Sequence record: NC_010153.1
DNA length: 36,895 nt
Strand: one strand, 5' to 3'
Each line of letters begins with the position of its first letter. Position 1 is the first letter of the stretch. The position numbers and the translations under genes are program-made. The notes beneath the pieces are model-generated. The model was not told the DNA's origin. It did not search any database and saw nothing but the letters and a program-made list of their open reading frames with translations. Positions 5,723 to 36,895 of this stretch are shown here, in pieces.

Positions 5723-6157
5723 TTATTTTATTCTTATTTTTTTGAGTATCCTTCTTGTTAATATGTATATTGTTCTAATTGCTTTTTTCTTTTCGTTTTC
5801 ATCATCAATTTTCTGTGCTAGTTCCGCTAATGTGTTTATCATCGTTATTATTTCATCAATCTCTTTTTTCTCAATTTCATAAGTGTATCTTAGATCTACT
5901 GCGATTTCGTAAGCTTTCTTGATTTCTTGTTGTAGTTTTAATGTTGTTGCTATTTTTTCTCCTTGTTCAGTTAACAATGCGATATCTTGTAATTTGTTTT
6001 TCTCTTTATCAAAATTTATTTTTATTTCTGTCAATCCTTTTTTTATCAAGCTATTTATTATTCTCCTTGTTTTTCCTTCTCTAATTTCAATTTCTTTTTT
6101 ATCAAATAAGTAAATAAGAATTCGTTTTTCGCCGTTTGACAATTTTGTTTCCAACAT
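5723..6157 (-). CDS. Winged-helix (MarR-like) DNA-binding protein with helical C-terminus, about 144 aa
   Basis: LSNGEKRILIYL...IINSLIKKGLTEI...ALLTEQGEKIA is a wHTH pattern; SD AAGGTGG before ATG 6157. Confidence 0.7.
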   Translation of the reverse strand: MLETKLSNGEKRILIYLFDKKEIEIREGKTRRIINSLIKKGLTEIKINFDKEKNKLQDIALLTEQGEKIATTLKLQQEIKKAYEIAVDLRYTYEIEKKEIDEIITMINTLAELAQKIDDENEKKKAIRTIYILTRRILKKIRIK

Positions 6158-6198
6158 AGTACCACCTTTAGTTTGTAAGAAATAGGAATAGAAAAAAA

Positions 6199-6528
6199 TT
6201 ATTGAATTTCGAATAACCAAAGTTCATATCCTATTTTTTCCAGTTCTTCTGTCGTTTTAATTACGACACCTTCTGGTAACCTTTGCTTTAAAGAAAATGC
6301 TATAATTTTGTCTCCGTGCGTTGCTCTGATGGCTATTCGGTTTACTGGGACATTAACTCCTAAGACGTTTGTAAGCAATTCTGCTGTTGCTTGGTGACCT
6401 ATAGCGGACGTGAAGTTCTCTTTTTTCACTAATTCTCTTGCTTCTTCAATGCTTATCTGTCTTGCCTTTACGGTATACTCCTCCCCTGGTTTTAGGGGGA
6501 GGATTTGGGCATTTAAAATGTATAGCAT
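6199..6528 (-). CDS. acrIII-1: AcrIII-1 family viral ring nuclease (DUF1874, AFV3-109-like), 109 aa
   Basis: MLYILN start, SAIGH45QATA catalytic GH motif, VNR and QRLPEG motifs typical of the family. Confidence 0.9.
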   Translation of the reverse strand: MLYILNAQILPLKPGEEYTVKARQISIEEARELVKKENFTSAIGHQATAELLTNVLGVNVPVNRIAIRATHGDKIIAFSLKQRLPEGVVIKTTEELEKIGYELWLFEIQ

Positions 6529-6647
6529 ATGTTGTAGTGTATTTTTGAGATATATAAATTTTTCTTTAGCCGAAAAACGGAAGAATCTTTGTTTTCGTTC
6601 TTTATGAAGAGAAAAAGGGAAAAATAAAAAAAGGGAATGACTTTTAA

Positions 6648-7319
6648 TTAATCCGCTTTCCTAACGGGTGGGTGAACGAGTAGATAAATACCTTTCTCTA
6701 GTACTATGGGATTATGGTCTTCGCTTTTGATCTCTAGTTTATCTTCTACGTTTACTAGTATTCCGTCACCAGCATGAATTAATTTTACTTGCCCTTCGGC
6801 ATAATGGTTGTATAAGATTAACGGATAGTCGTAAAATTCTAGGTAGTCCGGTATCGATTCTACCTTGTAAATCTCCAAATGCCCTTGTTCTATGAACGGT
6901 TCCGATACATAGGTTGGCGCTTTGTGCGCTAGGTATACTGTTATCCCGTAATTAGTAAACGTTACTAAATATTTTCTTCCTGTCGTTAGTGTTCTCAGAA
7001 AGTTTCCAAATGTTTTTAGAAACACTTCAGGGATTACTAGCTTGTCTCTTGTGAACTTGCTATCGCTCTCAACATATAGTTTTTGCCAATCCTCAATCCA
7101 TAATCCTCTCACTATTTTCGCTTCAATATTTCCGTTTTCGTCTATCCAAATTCTGTAACATCCTTCACTACTCATTCCACTATTACTGATGTATAATTTG
7201 CAGTCTATAACGTTCCTGTCGTTGCCTATTTTAATTTTGTAGATCCATCCAGTCTTCCCTTTTAATTGGAAAACCGGGGGTTCCGGTAGTTCCGGTACTC
7301 GAATTTGTTGAGACTCCAT
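6648..7319 (-). CDS. Hypothetical protein, 223 aa, C-terminal HxxH/IxLxxGxY...D motif
   Basis: ORF track; own promoter and SD GGGGATAGT; C-terminus IKSEDHNPIVLEKGIYLLVHPPVRKAD resembles the 122-aa RQGD protein. Confidence 0.85.
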   Translation of the reverse strand: MESQQIRVPELPEPPVFQLKGKTGWIYKIKIGNDRNVIDCKLYISNSGMSSEGCYRIWIDENGNIEAKIVRGLWIEDWQKLYVESDSKFTRDKLVIPEVFLKTFGNFLRTLTTGRKYLVTFTNYGITVYLAHKAPTYVSEPFIEQGHLEIYKVESIPDYLEFYDYPLILYNHYAEGQVKLIHAGDGILVNVEDKLEIKSEDHNPIVLEKGIYLLVHPPVRKAD

Positions 7320-7369
7320 ACTATCCCCTCCACTTATAAATTAGGAAAAAAGGATATATAAATGTTTCT
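7317..7369 (-). promoter_or_regulatory. Promoter/5'UTR cassette shared with the gene at 8660-9013
   Basis: ggatatataaatgtttct is identical at 7352-7369 and 9044-9061; catactatcccct is identical at 7317-7329 and 9011-9023. Confidence 0.8.
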
Positions 7370-7445
7370 TCTGTGGTTTATTTCAAGAAGATGAGAGAAA
7401 TAGAAAAGATAGAAGATATGAGTTGATAGAAAAACAAAAAATGTC

Positions 7446-7931
7446 TTAAGCTTCAGAAAGTTTTATGATTCCAAACCCTTTGTTCTTTTTTGCCCCTATT
7501 TTCAATAAAATCGGTAGTTTTATTTCTTGATTAAATATCAGTGTGGTGTTAGTCTTTGATCCTGCAATCAAATATTCATAGTTTGTCAGTGAATTGACAA
7601 CTTTCCTTGTTCCTATTCTCACATAATCTTTGGGGAATGTTATTATTCCTGAAACCACTGCATTTTGATATTGTGGGTATTGTGTTCTTAATGCTCCAGT
7701 TATAGTAAATGATGGTATGATGATGTTGCATAATGCGTCTCTGTCAAAGGCACGGTCTACATGGTCAATAAGTTCATGAAATTCTTCAGGGTAGCACTTC
7801 TTTAGATCTTGCAATTGTAATTTTTTCATCGCTTTGTTGGGACTCAGCGAAGGTGCAATCACTGGCGTTAATATTTCGATTATAATATTTTTCGTAAAGT
7901 TGTTGTTTTGTTTATTGTTAGTTTGTGCCAT
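7446..7931 (-). CDS. Minimal RAMP-superfamily (Cas7/Csm3-like) protein, 161 aa
   Basis: Three RAMP hallmarks in order: beta1 IIIEILTPV; VD59RAFDRD...IIPSFTITGALR (cf. Csm3 D..vrd...IPGSSLKGxxR); C-terminal G-rich loop IG146AKKNKG152FG154IIKL. Confidence 0.82.
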   Translation of the reverse strand: MAQTNNKQNNNFTKNIIIEILTPVIAPSLSPNKAMKKLQLQDLKKCYPEEFHELIDHVDRAFDRDALCNIIIPSFTITGALRTQYPQYQNAVVSGIITFPKDYVRIGTRKVVNSLTNYEYLIAGSKTNTTLIFNQEIKLPILLKIGAKKNKGFGIIKLSEA

Positions 7932-7953
7932 ACGTTTATATTAGTAGAAAAGC

Positions 7954-7968
7954 TATATAAGCTTTTTG
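7954..7968 (-). promoter_or_regulatory. BRE-TATA promoter of the RAMP gene (probably leaderless)
   Basis: Minus strand AAAAAGCTTATATA ends 22 nt upstream of ATG 7931. Confidence 0.7.
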
Positions 7969-8012
7969 CGAGTGGTTTTCGAAAACTTTATAAGATTCTG
8001 AGTGTATATTTT

Positions 8013-8111
8013 GTTGCCCGAAAGAAGATGAGGGCGTGAGAGTTGCGATTTATGTCATCGTTGCTATTCCTCTTGACGTGAACCCCGGCGTTGTGGGGCG
8101 ATATGTCTTTT
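8013..8111 (+). ncRNA. Putative small RNA 1 (8 hexamers, 8036-8083)
   Basis: TGCCC/GGGCG 5' stem; T at 8037, 8043, 8049, 8055, 8061, 8067, 8073, 8079; CCCC/GGGG 3' stem; T-run 8108-8111. Ends are inferred. Confidence 0.72.
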
Positions 8112-8147
8112 ATCCGAAAGTTTTATAAGATTCTAAGCGCATATCTT

Positions 8148-8252
8148 ATCGCCCGATAAATGATGAGGGCGTGAGAGTTAAGGTGTATGTTATCGTTATT
8201 TTGACCGTTCACATGACCATGAACCCCGGCGTTGTGGGGCGATAATTCTTTT
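8148..8252 (+). ncRNA. Putative small RNA 2 (9 hexamers, 8171-8224)
   Basis: CGCCC/GGGCG stem; T every 6 nt from 8172 to 8220; 3' stem; T-rich end. Ends are inferred. Confidence 0.75.
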
Positions 8253-8291
8253 CTTTAACGAAAGTTTTATAAGATTCTAAGCGCATATCTT

Positions 8292-8385
8292 ATCGCCCGA
8301 TAAATGATGAGGGCGTTGTGATTTGTGTTGTTATTACGATACACGTTCTCATGAGCCCCACTTCCGTGGGGCGATATGTCTTTTT
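8292..8385 (+). ncRNA. Putative small RNA 3 (7 hexamers, 8315-8356)
   Basis: Same 5' stem; T every 6 nt from 8316 to 8352; perfect GCCCCAC-ttcc-GTGGGGC hairpin; T5 at 8381-8385. Confidence 0.75.
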
Positions 8386-8423
8386 CATGACGAAAATTTT
8401 ATAATATTCAAAGTTAAAGTGTT

Positions 8424-8520
8424 ATCGCCCGATAATAGATGAGGGCGTTGCGATTCGTTTTGCTTTTGTGGTACACGTTTTCATGAACCCCACGGGGGTG
8501 GGGCGATAATTCTTGTTTAT
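8424..8520 (+). ncRNA. Putative small RNA 4 (7 hexamers, 8447-8488)
   Basis: Same 5' stem; T every 6 nt from 8448 to 8484; CCCCAC-gggg-GTGGGG hairpin; T-rich tail; no in-frame start codon near the putative 5' end. Confidence 0.75.
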
Positions 8521-8659
8521 TCCCTTTTTTTCTCACTTTGCAAATATTTTTACTATTCTGGACTTTGAAAAATATTGAAAGATAGAAGAAAGAATAAAGT
8601 AGAAAAAATATCCAAAAAGTGAAAAAAATGAAGTATAAAAAATAAAATAGGGAAAAAAA

Positions 8660-9013
8660 TCATTTGACTTGAATCCATCCTTTGTTACTTTTGAATACGT
8701 AGAAATATGTGTCTTTCCATTCTTCGTGATCCGAGTCTTCAGTTACTTTTATTACAACTTCTCTTGTTTTTGGAATTATGGCAACGTCTCTTACTAACGT
8801 TTTTCCGTAATTCTCTTCTTTCTCTTTCAATGTTATTGCGATAACGTCTCCGTATAGTATACTGTATTTCCTAACGAACCAGTCGAAATTACTAGTGTCG
8901 TCTATTGTCTCTATTTCCAGAATAAAGTTTCTCTCCGGCTCATTTTTTTCTGCTTTTTGAATTAATTCTTTTAGTTCTTCTTCGCTTATTTCATTATTTA
9001 GTTCCTGTTGCAT
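8660..9013 (-). CDS. Acidic hypothetical protein, 117 aa (anti-defence candidate by context)
   Basis: ORF track; promoter/SD cassette identical to that of the 223-aa gene. Confidence 0.85.
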   Translation of the reverse strand: MQQELNNEISEEELKELIQKAEKNEPERNFILEIETIDDTSNFDWFVRKYSILYGDVIAITLKEKEENYGKTLVRDVAIIPKTREVVIKVTEDSDHEEWKDTYFYVFKSNKGWIQVK

Positions 9014-9187
9014 ACTATCCCCTGCTAATAATATATAGCAAATGGATATATAAATGTTTCTCTATTATATTCTCTTTTTAAAGAGAGGGGGATATTCTCT
9101 TTTTCTCCTTTCTCTGAAAGAAAAATTGGATTGATAATAGTATCATGATTTTTGCTTTAAATAGTATTACTGTGTAATTATCTAATT

Positions 9188-9340
9188 ATGAGCCTAGAAT
9201 ATGAAATTCTAAAAGTTGAGTGCAAAGAAAATAACTGTTTTATTACCTTGAAGTTAATAAGAAATGGCACAGTAGAGATTTTCAACTCTGTACCAATTGA
9301 AAATATAAACAAACTGATAGAGAATTTCTCATTTTTTTAG
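9188..9340 (+). CDS. Unannotated 50-aa ORF MSLEYEILKVECKENNCFITLKLIRNGTVEIFNSVPIENINKLIENFSFF
   Basis: Manual translation; TTTAAATA at 9156-9163, 24 nt upstream; T-run at the stop. Confidence 0.6.
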   Translation: MSLEYEILKVECKENNCFITLKLIRNGTVEIFNSVPIENINKLIENFSFF

Positions 9341-9399
9341 TCGAAAAATAATTTTTGATTCTGTGTAATACTGAATTGGTTTTCTTTACATATAGGAAA

Positions 9400-9725
9400 A
9401 AGTTTACACTTATCTTATCACAATTTTACTAGTTGTACTTATACTTTAGTAATCTAGTTTACACTTAGTTTTTTTGAAATGTTATCGGTGTGCTCATTTT
9501 TTATTCCAAGAGGAGAGATTAATTAACGTTTGTCTGCACAAAATTCTACTATTCTAGTTTATACTTTTGTAGGCAAATTTAAATTGTAAACCAGGCGGGA
9601 AAGTCTTGTAATTGTCAAGTTTGAATTATAATAAAAGAATTGAGAGGATTAGAAAATTATGAAGAGGAGTGAGATCAATTAACGTTTGTCTGCACAAAAA
9701 CCTACTAGACTTACTTATACTTTAC
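9400..9725. repeat. Intergenic direct repeats (candidate origin or protein-binding sites)
   Basis: 23-nt exact repeat aattaacgtttgtctgcacaaaa at 9521-9543 and 9677-9699 with similar flanks; RYTTAYACTT motif at 9402, 9437, 9457, 9557, 9713. Confidence 0.7.
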
Positions 9726-9964
9726 TATTCAGATATACGCTTAGCTGATTTACAATTAATATAGAAATTTTATTACAAAAATTTGAAAAATTGCTTATGA
9801 ACTTACTTATTGCCCCAATTTAGGGTATTTTCTCACTCTAGAACAAAGTTTTTAAGCAATTTTTATATTATACATGATATATTTTGTAAAGCGCAATAAA
9901 GTGATCTTAATGTGGAGAAAAAGATATATAAGCTTATAATCAAATATATATAGTAGGGGAGAGT

Positions 9965-10219
9965 ATGCAAGAAGGAAACGTGACAATAAAAGTGACTGAA
10001 GAGGAAACAAGAAAGAGATTAGAAAAAGAATTAGAAAAACTAGAAAAGGTAAACGAAATTTTAGATAATGTAAATAAAGTTATGGCGGAGTTAAGTGATA
10101 CATGTCATATGGCGATAGAGTCAATGCCAAGCGTAAGAAAAGAATTAATAGAACAGTGTTCAAATGTTCAGAAACAATTATACAAACTATATGATATAAT
10201 TTCTGATACAGTATATTAA
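9965..10219 (+). CDS. Coiled-coil hypothetical protein, 84 aa
   Basis: ORF track; TATA boxes and SD GGGGAGAGT upstream; T-run terminator downstream. Confidence 0.8.
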   Translation: MQEGNVTIKVTEEETRKRLEKELEKLEKVNEILDNVNKVMAELSDTCHMAIESMPSVRKELIEQCSNVQKQLYKLYDIISDTVY

Positions 10220-10412
10220 AGTCAATTCTCTTTTTTTTATTCTTCTTTCATTCTTGATGGAGAGAATTCTGAGTTATACTATTATACATATATTATATAT
10301 ATGAATTATGTGTTTTCTCTCATTCTTGATGAAGAGAATGAGACAACATGCATTATTCATATATATAATATATGTATAATAGTTGCCAGAAAAAGTTCAA
10401 GGAAAAACGATT

Positions 10413-36479: not shown

Positions 36480-36895
36480 AATACAAAAGGTAGAACAAAA
36501 AATAAGATAGAGAGAGCAAATGATATAGGGCACGACGACACGAGATACAGACTGAGCAAACGAGAGCAAATGACGAGGAACGAAAGACGAGAAACGAGAG
36601 ACAAAGAAAGGGAAACAATGACATAGGGTACTACGAACGAAAATACGACAAACGATAAACAAAAGAACGGGAAATGAGAACGAGAAACAATGACATAGAG
36701 TACTAACGAACGAGACGTGAAGAACGAGAAAATGAGAGACGAGGAACGAAGAAGGAAACGATGACGTAGGATACTAACGAACGAGAAACAAGAAACGAGG
36801 AAATGAGAAACTAGAAACTAGATACTAAATACGAGATACATGACACGAAGATACGAGATACTAGATACGAGATACTAAGGAACTAGATACTAGAC
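36480..36895. repeat. Right subterminal low-complexity region with ~72-nt degenerate tandem repeats
   Basis: (A/G)ATGACRTAG.(G/A)TACTA.CGAACGA at 36617, 36689, 36760 (looser copy at 36519); many ACGAGA words; CTAGATAC at 36818, 36861, 36883. Confidence 0.8.

Follow-up and report, generated by a model that had tools for sequence, protein, structure and literature searches.

The stretch of DNA considered here (the window) spans the whole linear genome, 36,895 bp in length, of Acidianus filamentous virus 7 (AFV7; Betalipothrixvirus pezzuloense, host Acidianus convivator), recorded as AM087122 / NC_010153 and recovered at 100% identity by a megablast of positions 6000-9200. On its minus strand, at 7446-7931, lies ORF161 (AFV7_gp13), an open reading frame (ORF) that begins with ATG, carries the annotation "hypothetical protein" in the record and encodes 161 amino acids (aa) with the predicted features of a miniature Cas7-type RAMP. 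The 730-nt gap upstream of this gene contains four tandem units of 132-141 nt, each of which contains a hairpin of a distinctive kind. A first-pass annotation, made from the sequence, had described the product of ORF161 as one of the smallest RAMP-like proteins; the segments it quoted (NIIIEILTPV, HVDRAFDRDALCNIIIPSFTITGALR and IGAKKNKGFGIIKL) match the translation exactly and its residue numbering is correct.

Direct reading of the sequence places a TATA-like box, AAGCTTATATAGCTTTT, on the minus strand at 7948-7964, about 30 nt upstream of the ATG, where it would be the probable promoter of a leaderless ORF161 mRNA. The same 17-nt TATA-containing element, AAAAG(C/A)TATATAAGCTT, precedes both ORF161 (7948-7964, minus strand) and ORF84 (9919-9935, plus strand), a hint that the two genes use one type of promoter and may be co-regulated.

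The fold and conserved residues of ORF161

The structure of ORF161 was predicted with AlphaFold2 (AF2). A model based on six sequences had a predicted local distance difference test (pLDDT) score of 87.7; with 24 sequences the score rose to 94.3 (predicted template-modeling (TM) score, pTM, 0.85), and all five models reached at least 93. Both models were compared to the Protein Data Bank (PDB) using Foldseek and, in each case, the best 50 matches listed comprise only RAMP subunits of type III and type VII CRISPR complexes. For the model with a pLDDT of 94.3 all 50 are Cas7-type chains, 26 of them at E ≤ 1e-3. The best match is the type VII Cas7 8yhe_J (E 8e-5, TMq 0.59), and the highest query-normalized TM-score is 0.60. 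Type VII Cas7 entries among the matches are 8yhe, 8z4j and 9j9e; Csm3 is represented by proteins from Enterococcus italicus, Staphylococcus epidermidis, Lactococcus lactis, Streptococcus thermophilus and mycobacteria (including 9g9k_I and 8do6_E); and the remainder include Cmr4 of the Sulfolobus Cmr-beta complex (6s91_G), the Cas7 paralogues of SsoCsm, and Cas7-11. Sequence identity to these solved Cas7 proteins is 10-15%. A search of a viral structure library returned strong matches to ORF161 itself and its homologue from Los Azufres only, followed by a phage protein labeled "RAMP superfamily" (E 9e-3).

Sequence-based searches gave faint signals of the same kind. In Pfam, ORF161 matches RAMPs (PF03787) with an E of 0.052 over residues 141-156 only, that is, over the glycine-rich loop (G-loop); among 24 family members (see below) seven match the same model, all below threshold, with a best E of 1.7e-4. 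PADLOC models matching the 24 members are nearly exclusively Cas7_IIId, Cas7_IIIg, Csm3 and Cas5_III (best 5e-5; Csm3 and Cas7_IIId range from 5e-5 to 1e-2). HMMER found nothing relevant among all PDB sequences, whether the query was the single protein or a seq-profile of seven sequences; NCBIfam returned no match and PHROGs a chance-level match only. Because the Foldseek lists and the weak Pfam RAMPs and PADLOC matches all converge on the same group, the models support the assignment of ORF161 as a very divergent, very small Cas7-type RAMP of the Csm3/Cmr4 kind. The RAMP-like pattern of the first-pass description thus exceeds chance, with matches to type III and VII subunits throughout the best 50, and "one of the smallest" is a fair description for 161 aa given that the matching Cas7 chains in the PDB have 185-300 residues, against 149-215 aa in the family.

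Relatives of ORF161 are few. A search of 5.8 billion clustered proteins turned up five that are close, and a complete HMMER run against 1.84 billion representative sequences gave 19 family representatives, ranging from 111 to 215 aa. One relative belongs to an isolate record, namely orf18 of Los Azufres archaeal virus 2 (30% identity). Scanning 185,579 reference genomes recovered a single family member, on a 1,342-nt contig of a metagenome-assembled genome (MAG) that is probably mis-binned. IMG/VR proteins yielded only AFV7 itself, a scan of JGI metagenomes gave no match, and tblastn detected no relative in rudiviruses.

An alignment of 24 members, which are 23-84% identical to ORF161, reveals seven invariant residues (H57, D59, F62, R64, E119, G152 and G154) and a further five conserved in at least 90% of members (P27, K36, G95, G146 and K151). 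Four of the invariant residues fall within the motif H-x-D-R-x-F-x-R, which in ORF161 reads H-V-D59-R-A-F-D-R (residues 57-64, 7740-7763, minus strand) and occupies the loop before helix alpha-1; the codon for H57 is at 7761-7763, that for D59 at 7755-7757 (gtc on the plus strand, GAC on the minus) and that for R60 at 7752-7754. Residues 70-82, IIIPSFTITGALR (7686-7724, minus strand), form a short strand and helix alpha-1 (modeled as strand 70-73 and helix 74-84). E119 is encoded at 7575-7577 (minus strand), and residues 146-154, G-A-K-K-N-K-G-F-G (7470-7496, minus strand), constitute the C-terminal glycine-rich RAMP loop, which is the part of the protein both aligned with the Csm3 G-loop and overlapped by the Pfam RAMPs match. 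Because the loop Asp, a neighboring His, two Arg residues and a Glu stay invariant down to 23% identity, we consider that they probably mark either an active site or a site at which RNA is bound very specifically.

Mutation of D32 in Csm3 of S. epidermidis abolishes cleavage of target RNA. The first-pass annotation had proposed that D59, or alternatively D63 or D65, occupies the position of this catalytic Asp. Using S. epidermidis Csm3 (residues 1-214 of the query are identical to PDB 7uzw_A), one local hhalign alignment of the family profile pairs LIDHVD59RAFDRDAL-CNIIIPSFTITGALRTQY with MIGAID32SPVVRDLQTKLPIIPGSSIKGKMRNLL, such that the motif at residues 57-64 lies opposite the catalytic loop I-D32-S-P-V-V-R-D. 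With a profile of 16 Csm3 sequences the top two local matches are the G-loop (IGAKKNKGFG against LGGGGTRGNG) and the segment spanning the Asp loop and alpha-1. When hhalign is relaxed, the alignment to Csm3 is co-linear over residues 12-161, with beta-1, alpha-1 and the G-loop each opposite its namesake; the residue pairs are D59 with D32, R64 with R37, D65 with D38, E119 with E140 (of the Csm3 motif PRQIERV) and IIIPSFTITGALR with IIPGSSIKGKMR. A 20-residue insertion in ORF161 corresponds to two predicted helices at residues 33-55. The alignment and the invariance of D59 in all 24 members favor this residue as the counterpart of D32. We call the equivalence likely, and not more, because the hhalign statistics are weak and the pairing derives from profiles and not from superposed coordinates. 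The two other candidates fare worse: D63 varies freely, and D65, mostly Asp or Asn across the family, is aligned with D38.

Hairpin units beside ORF161 and its relatives

Each of the four units upstream of ORF161 in AFV7 follows the same order on the plus strand. A motif resembling a B recognition element (BRE) and TATA box, CGAAA(A/G)TTTTATAAG, is followed about 25 nt later by a hairpin of the form (C/U)GCCC-GA-N5-GAU-GA-GGGCG; then come 40-50 G/U-rich nucleotides, a second hairpin (CCCC-N8-GGGG) and the sequence CGAUA(A/U)(U/G)UCUUUU. In unit U1 (8010-8112) the TATA-like sequence is at 7987-7994, the first hairpin, UGCCC-GA-AAGAAGAU-GA-GGGCG, at 8015-8036 (30.1 bits to the covariance model described below) and the second hairpin at 8083-8098, before a T-rich end. 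U2 (8145-8256) has its TATA-like sequence at 8121-8129, the hairpin CGCCC-GA-UAAAUGAU-GA-GGGCG at 8150-8171 (30.9 bits), the second hairpin at 8224-8239 and a T-rich end, and U3 (8289-8386) has the corresponding hairpins at 8294-8315 and 8356-8371, again with a T-rich end. The last unit, U4 (8421-8535), comprises CGCCC-GA-UAAUAGAU-GA-GGGCG at 8426-8447 (32.8 bits), a second hairpin at 8488-8503 and a long T-rich end. All four are on the plus strand. Because each unit has a TATA box and a T-rich end of its own, U1-U4 are probably four separate small-RNA genes, divergent from ORF161. An Rfam scan of the whole genome at E ≤ 1 assigned no family to the units and gave one chance-level match elsewhere.

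Three further features of the units were considered and set aside. A terminal stem (5' UUAUCG / 3' CGAUAA) received no support from RNAalifold, and the other clades conserve neither this stem nor a second kink-turn (K-turn) considered for the foot of hairpin 2. The unit tail, GATAAT...CGAAAG, might resemble a Sulfolobus CRISPR repeat, but is more simply explained as a terminator followed by the BRE/TATA of the next unit. A terminator-like match at 8355-8372, in U3, came from a bacterial promoter and terminator scanner that is not applicable to archaea and whose counts were at chance level overall.

In order to determine whether hairpins of this type accompany other members of the family, we scanned the genomic contexts of ORF161 relatives (designated by L-numbers) for hairpins with the arrangement stem-GA-loop-GA-stem. 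The hairpin, with a GC stem, GA, a loop ending in R-U, GA and stem, adjoins the gene in 13 of 14 distinct contexts, in one to eight copies. Among close relatives of ORF161, L003 has two and L022/23 four, upstream and divergent, as in AFV7. More distant relatives show other layouts: a single hairpin lies 14-170 nt 3' of the stop codon on the same strand in L009, L014-16, L019/20 and L021, whereas in L010-12 three hairpins follow the gene with a 97-nt period and two precede it. In L031/32, where the relative is 30% identical, four copies flank the gene and combine a common loop, UUUARAGAU, with four different stems. A short form of the hairpin (stem of 3-4 bp, loop of 5 nt) occurs four times upstream of the most distant member, on the same strand (L017), and eight times directly downstream of the gene in Los Azufres virus 2 (L002; 30% identity).

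The Los Azufres array has a CRISPR-like layout: eight repeats of about 20 nt, (A)UCCGGAnCnnUGAAGGACU, spaced at 53-72 nt, occupy 7481-7955 directly after orf18. Their outer stem pair shows the compensating changes U-A, G-C and A-U. The record annotates an opposite-strand gene, orf19, over part of the array; this annotation is probably spurious.

A covariance model was built from 21 long-form hairpins and used to search 114 kb. It added weaker variants in L008 (overlapping the stop codon) and L005, and found an independent hairpin, absent from the training set, upstream of the relative in L033 (23.8 bits, E 4e-4); there was no other strong match in the 114 kb. Counting a strict version of the motif gives 21 occurrences in the 30 kb that lie within ±1.25 kb of the family genes and three in the remaining 77 kb; in shuffled sequence the mean is 1.2 and the maximum six. 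The stems themselves covary. In the hairpin alignment 85.7% of cells are paired, compared to 57.6% in shuffles, and there are 26 double-sided stem changes compared to 5.7 (none of 500 shuffles reaches 26), with all slid registers scoring far lower. Stems include CGCCC/GGGCG, AGGGG/CCCCU, UUCCC/GGGAA, CACCC/GGGUG, GUCC/GGAC and GUCG/CGAC, while the G-A on either side of the loop never changes, and nor does the R-U just ahead of the second G-A. Tandem sheared G.A pairs beside a Watson-Crick stem, together with an N-R-U bulge, are the signature of the K-loop and K-turn, structures that are bound by the archaeal protein L7Ae. As read from its sequence, the conserved hairpin is a K-loop-type motif.

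Of the isolated viruses, AFV7 alone has the gene and the RNA array (tblastn and blastn), and a scan of IMG/VR with the AFV7-type hairpin pattern returned AFV7 and six single matches that are probably due to chance. Because the hairpin follows the gene through upstream-divergent, upstream same-strand and downstream layouts, gene and hairpin RNA appear, from their arrangement, to behave as one module that has been repeatedly rearranged and yet kept together.

This distribution bears on the simplest alternative, namely that the hairpins are L7Ae-binding stabilizers, terminators or regulatory elements, and that ORF161 does something unrelated. The motif does fit the general K-loop consensus, in several loci it lies directly after the stop codon or overlaps it, and L7Ae is reported to regulate mRNAs through K-turns in untranslated regions (PMC5539422). 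However, the motif is all but absent from the remaining 77 kb of these genomes and contigs, it tracks the one gene through varied layouts, and in AFV7 the hairpins head promoter-bearing units on the opposite strand; being on separate units, they are not part of the ORF161 mRNA. We regard this explanation as very unlikely.

Tandem arrays beside a gene also call to mind toxI-toxN, and Cas6 with CRISPR repeats. ORF161 could be a processing nuclease, a Cas6-like metal-independent RNase that cuts the arrays at the K-loop, or it could be the toxin of a pair resembling type III toxin-antitoxin systems (ToxIN), neutralized by the RNAs. The arrays in L010 (97-nt period) and L002 (about 65-nt period, eight repeats) have no visible internal promoters, and the His, Asp, Arg and Glu that such a nuclease might use are invariant. 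Weak matches to Cas6 exist: Pfam Cas6_C matches ORF161 over residues 10-157 with an E of 0.08 (14.2 bits, below the cut-off of 23), and a Cas6 model is among the PADLOC matches of the 24 members. The Cas7.1 domain of Cas7-11, moreover, is known to process its own CRISPR RNA (crRNA). Against this, no Cas6 chain is present among the best 50 PDB matches of either model, the fold is unrelated to that of ToxN/AbiQ, the units of the AFV7 clade each have their own TATA and T-rich end, and several loci have but a single hairpin. On balance we think a dedicated processing or toxin-antitoxin role improbable.

Genes and repeats in the neighborhood

The neighboring ORF109 (6199-6528, minus strand) is a homologue of the AcrIII-1 (DUF1874) viral ring nuclease and matches Pfam PF08960 (STIV_B116-like) with an E of 9.4e-31. 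The first-pass annotation had noted a ring-nuclease gene about 900 nt away, and the distance between the two genes is indeed 918 nt. An AcrIII-1 homologue also lies within 2 kb of the ORF161 relative in L013, a contig of a Zestosphaera MAG. No cas genes or CRISPR arrays were found in AFV7 or in any contig bearing a relative.

Proximity to an inhibitor of type III immunity raises the possibility, named as an alternative in the first-pass annotation, that ORF161 is a dominant-negative mimic, which would replace Cmr4 or Csm3 in the backbone of host Cmr/Csm complexes or cap the filament, with the RNAs either irrelevant or acting as decoy crRNAs. Its Cas7 fold, its position in a viral genome 918 nt from AcrIII-1, and the Cmr modules carried by Acidianus hosts (PMC3119797) are all compatible with such a role, as are two precedents among anti-CRISPR (Acr) proteins: AcrIIIB2, which binds Cmr4, and AcrIIIA1, a protein-RNA type III Acr. 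A mimic of an interface, however, is expected to stay host-like, and ORF161 is so divergent from solved Cas7 proteins as to fall below HMMER detection. It is about 25% shorter than cellular Cas7 proteins and lacks some 50-120 residues of the Csm3/Cmr4 periphery that form filament contacts. Furthermore, the family has diversified to 23% identity and nonetheless keeps an RNA motif of its own and an apparent active-site cluster, neither of which a passive mimic would need. We consider the mimic an unlikely explanation.

The Zestosphaera contig carries, in addition to the AcrIII-1-like gene, an Hjc gene. Two further proteins that it encodes, at 6900-7100 and 7990-8260, have long repeats rich in Thr and Pro and resemble each other in their hydrophobic C-terminal tails. 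By its content the contig looks viral or proviral, not chromosomal.

In an all-against-all BLAST of the loci the only recurrent protein neighbors are homologues of ORF117 (phrog_10536), found in AFV7 (8660-9013, minus strand), L010 (9355-9717) and L022 (4977-5126), that is, in three differently arranged loci. ORF117 was considered as an obligate partner of ORF161 and rejected: SIRV1 variant XX and ARV2 also have it close to their genome ends, and both lack ORF161.

Repeats of other kinds are present elsewhere in the window. A second noncoding gap, at 9340-9965, contains three copies of a 67-nt repeat (9395-9461, 9515-9581 and 9671-9737; 63-79% identity, spaced at 120 and 156 nt), which has neither a K-loop motif nor an Rfam match and may represent further small transcription units or repeats with a regulatory function. 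A large AT-rich inverted repeat at 10278-10383, with ORF84 on one side and the 3' end of the gene for the ORF564 helicase on the other, has 49-nt arms that are 90% complementary and separated by 8 nt; it could form a cruciform, resemble an origin or terminate transcription in both directions. The genome ends (186-232 and 36572-36895) carry short tandem repeats with periods of 7, 14, 22 and 50 nt (such as AGATACT and GACGAGAAACGAAA), typical of linear lipothrixvirus termini.

A viral Cas7-like protein with proposed partner RNAs

If the mimic, the processing nuclease and the unrelated regulatory element are set aside, what might a solitary Cas7-type protein do beside a set of hairpin RNAs? The reading toward which we lean, with somewhat better than even confidence, is that ORF161 is a virus-encoded miniature Cas7 that acts with dedicated K-loop small RNAs to bind RNA and perhaps to cut it. 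The protein keeps the RRM core, the likely counterpart of the catalytic loop Asp (D59) and the C-terminal G-loop in the order seen in Csm3. Its gene lies outside any CRISPR-cas locus and is instead paired with putative small-RNA genes of the virus, each RNA consisting of a 5' K-loop hairpin followed by 40-60 nt of low structure. The Cas7 fold grips single-stranded RNA, and Csm3 and Cmr4 cut the target paired to it. ORF161 might, in the Cas7 manner, bind its RNAs along their single-stranded part, or it might bind at the hairpin; in either case the product would be a small viral ribonucleoprotein (RNP). The cluster H57/D59/R64/E119 could then cleave the precursor of the partner RNA, or an RNA paired to the partner. 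Processing would not be required in the AFV7 clade, because every unit has its own promoter, but would be needed for the L010 and Los Azufres arrays, because these are without visible internal promoters.

We rank the mimic below such a viral RNP because of the divergence of the family, the missing periphery, the retention of residues of catalytic type and the possession of RNAs of its own. As to biological role, the adjacent AcrIII-1 gene, the variable left arm of the genome in which both lie, the patchy spread of the family and the Cmr modules of Acidianus together suggest that ORF161 functions in virus-host or virus-virus conflict. Counter-defense against type III CRISPR would be the leading candidate, on circumstantial grounds.

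A more radical form of the same idea is a minimal RNA-guided, RNA-targeting system that is independent of CRISPR. In this "Cas7-only" effector several mini-Cas7 proteins would coat the 40-60-nt segment, D59 would slice complementary transcripts of the host or of a rival virus (defense mRNAs, for example), the 5' hairpin would act as a handle, maybe capped by host L7Ae, and hard-wired guide genes would take the place of a CRISPR array. Targets were sought for the middle segments of the RNAs. With Watson-Crick and G-U pairs allowed, the four AFV7 segments were no more complementary to the remainder of their own genome than shuffled segments were; when 50,697 virus records were searched by blastn with the arrays of AFV7, L010 and L002, no antisense match emerged; and none of 185,579 reference genomes contains the conserved core of U1 exactly. 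We hold RNA-guided targeting to be an unlikely proposition.

Several points weigh against the view that ORF161 and the K-loop RNAs form a small viral RNP. Its TM-scores, at 0.5-0.6, denote in the models a likeness at the level of fold only, and the Pfam RAMPs score of 14.5 bits is below the gathering threshold of 22.1. The alignment of D59 with D32 carries an hhalign probability of 6-8% only (pairwise E 0.004-0.006), and the likely equivalence of the two residues draws on profile alignment and the order of secondary structure elements. One context, L013, has no hairpin recognizable by motif or covariance-model scans. K-loops being classic L7Ae sites, the hairpin may recruit host L7Ae and not ORF161; that U1-U4 are produced as RNAs and bound by ORF161 is something we infer from their layout. 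Lastly, there are no complementary targets for the middle segments in the collections searched, although little weight can be put on these negatives, since mismatches are tolerated in pairing of the type III kind and the host, Acidianus convivator, may lie outside the collections.

Comparison to known systems places the putative RNP apart from each of them. With Csm3 and Cmr4, ORF161 shares the fold class and the order of motifs (beta-1, loop Asp, the I-I-P-x-S/F...G..R helix, the Glu strand and the G-loop). It differs in length (161 aa compared to 214-300 aa), in the helical hairpin at residues 33-55 between beta-1 and the Asp loop, and in a family-wide invariant His two residues before the Asp; moreover, in the viruses that encode it no gene for Cas10, Cas5, a small subunit or Cas6 lies close by, and no CRISPR array, and the RNAs it is paired with are not of CRISPR origin. 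The type VII Cas7 proteins (8yhe, 8z4j and 9j9e) are the best structural matches and the nearest in size, at 185-199 aa, but are encoded in cas operons with CRISPR arrays; in the type VII Cas14-Cas7-Cas5 complex it is Cas14 that cuts, the Cas7 backbone not being a nuclease.

Cas6 with its CRISPR repeat, and ToxN with ToxI, offer the parallel of a gene for a small RNA-binding or RNA-cutting protein beside tandem hairpin repeats. In contrast to these, ORF161 has a Cas7 fold, its hairpin is a K-loop with tandem G-A, and the units, of 65-140 nt, are separate transcription units in AFV7. The K-loop signature is shared with L7Ae-bound box C/D and H/ACA small RNAs, and the 3' side of the loop often reads (A/U)GAUGA, resembling a C box; unlike those RNAs, however, the partner RNAs have no D, C' or D' box, ACA box, pseudouridylation pocket or Rfam match. 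The AFV7 hairpin is, we presume, unlike the Sulfolobales CRISPR repeat, and hence unlike the Racr elements, solitary repeat units that serve as RNA anti-CRISPRs by mimicking host CRISPR repeats (PMC10651486). AcrIIIA1 is a protein-RNA complex that binds fragments of host t(m)RNA, and its protein is not a RAMP (PMC11662646). Both are conceptual precedents only, for the use of virus small RNAs or a protein-RNA complex against CRISPR effectors, and are probably unrelated to ORF161. Of the other type III Acrs, DUF1874 is represented by ORF109 and not by ORF161, and AcrIIIB2 has been reported from SIRV3 only, without homologues.

A full-text search of the literature, the original AFV7 genome paper aside, yielded no account of ORF161, none of a viral Cas7 that stands alone and none of lipothrixvirus arrays of K-loop RNAs, and the pairing of a viral Cas7-type protein with dedicated K-loop small-RNA genes appears to be undescribed. 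To our knowledge, every Cas7 protein so far described is a subunit of a CRISPR effector that has several proteins and is encoded in a cas locus, and very few inhibitors of type III systems have been found. A stand-alone Cas7 of three-quarters the usual size, with the catalytic-loop Asp kept and a spread among hot-spring archaeal viruses, would, if our reading is right, represent a new way of combining RAMP proteins with RNAs. It could be a new class of protein-RNA anti-CRISPR directed at type III systems, or a viral RAMP module akin to RNA-processing or toxin-antitoxin systems. It could also be what remains of the simplest RNA-guided machine built on Cas7, or a side branch of it, in which case it would bear on the origin of type III effectors, and might provide a compact, programmable RNA-binding scaffold.

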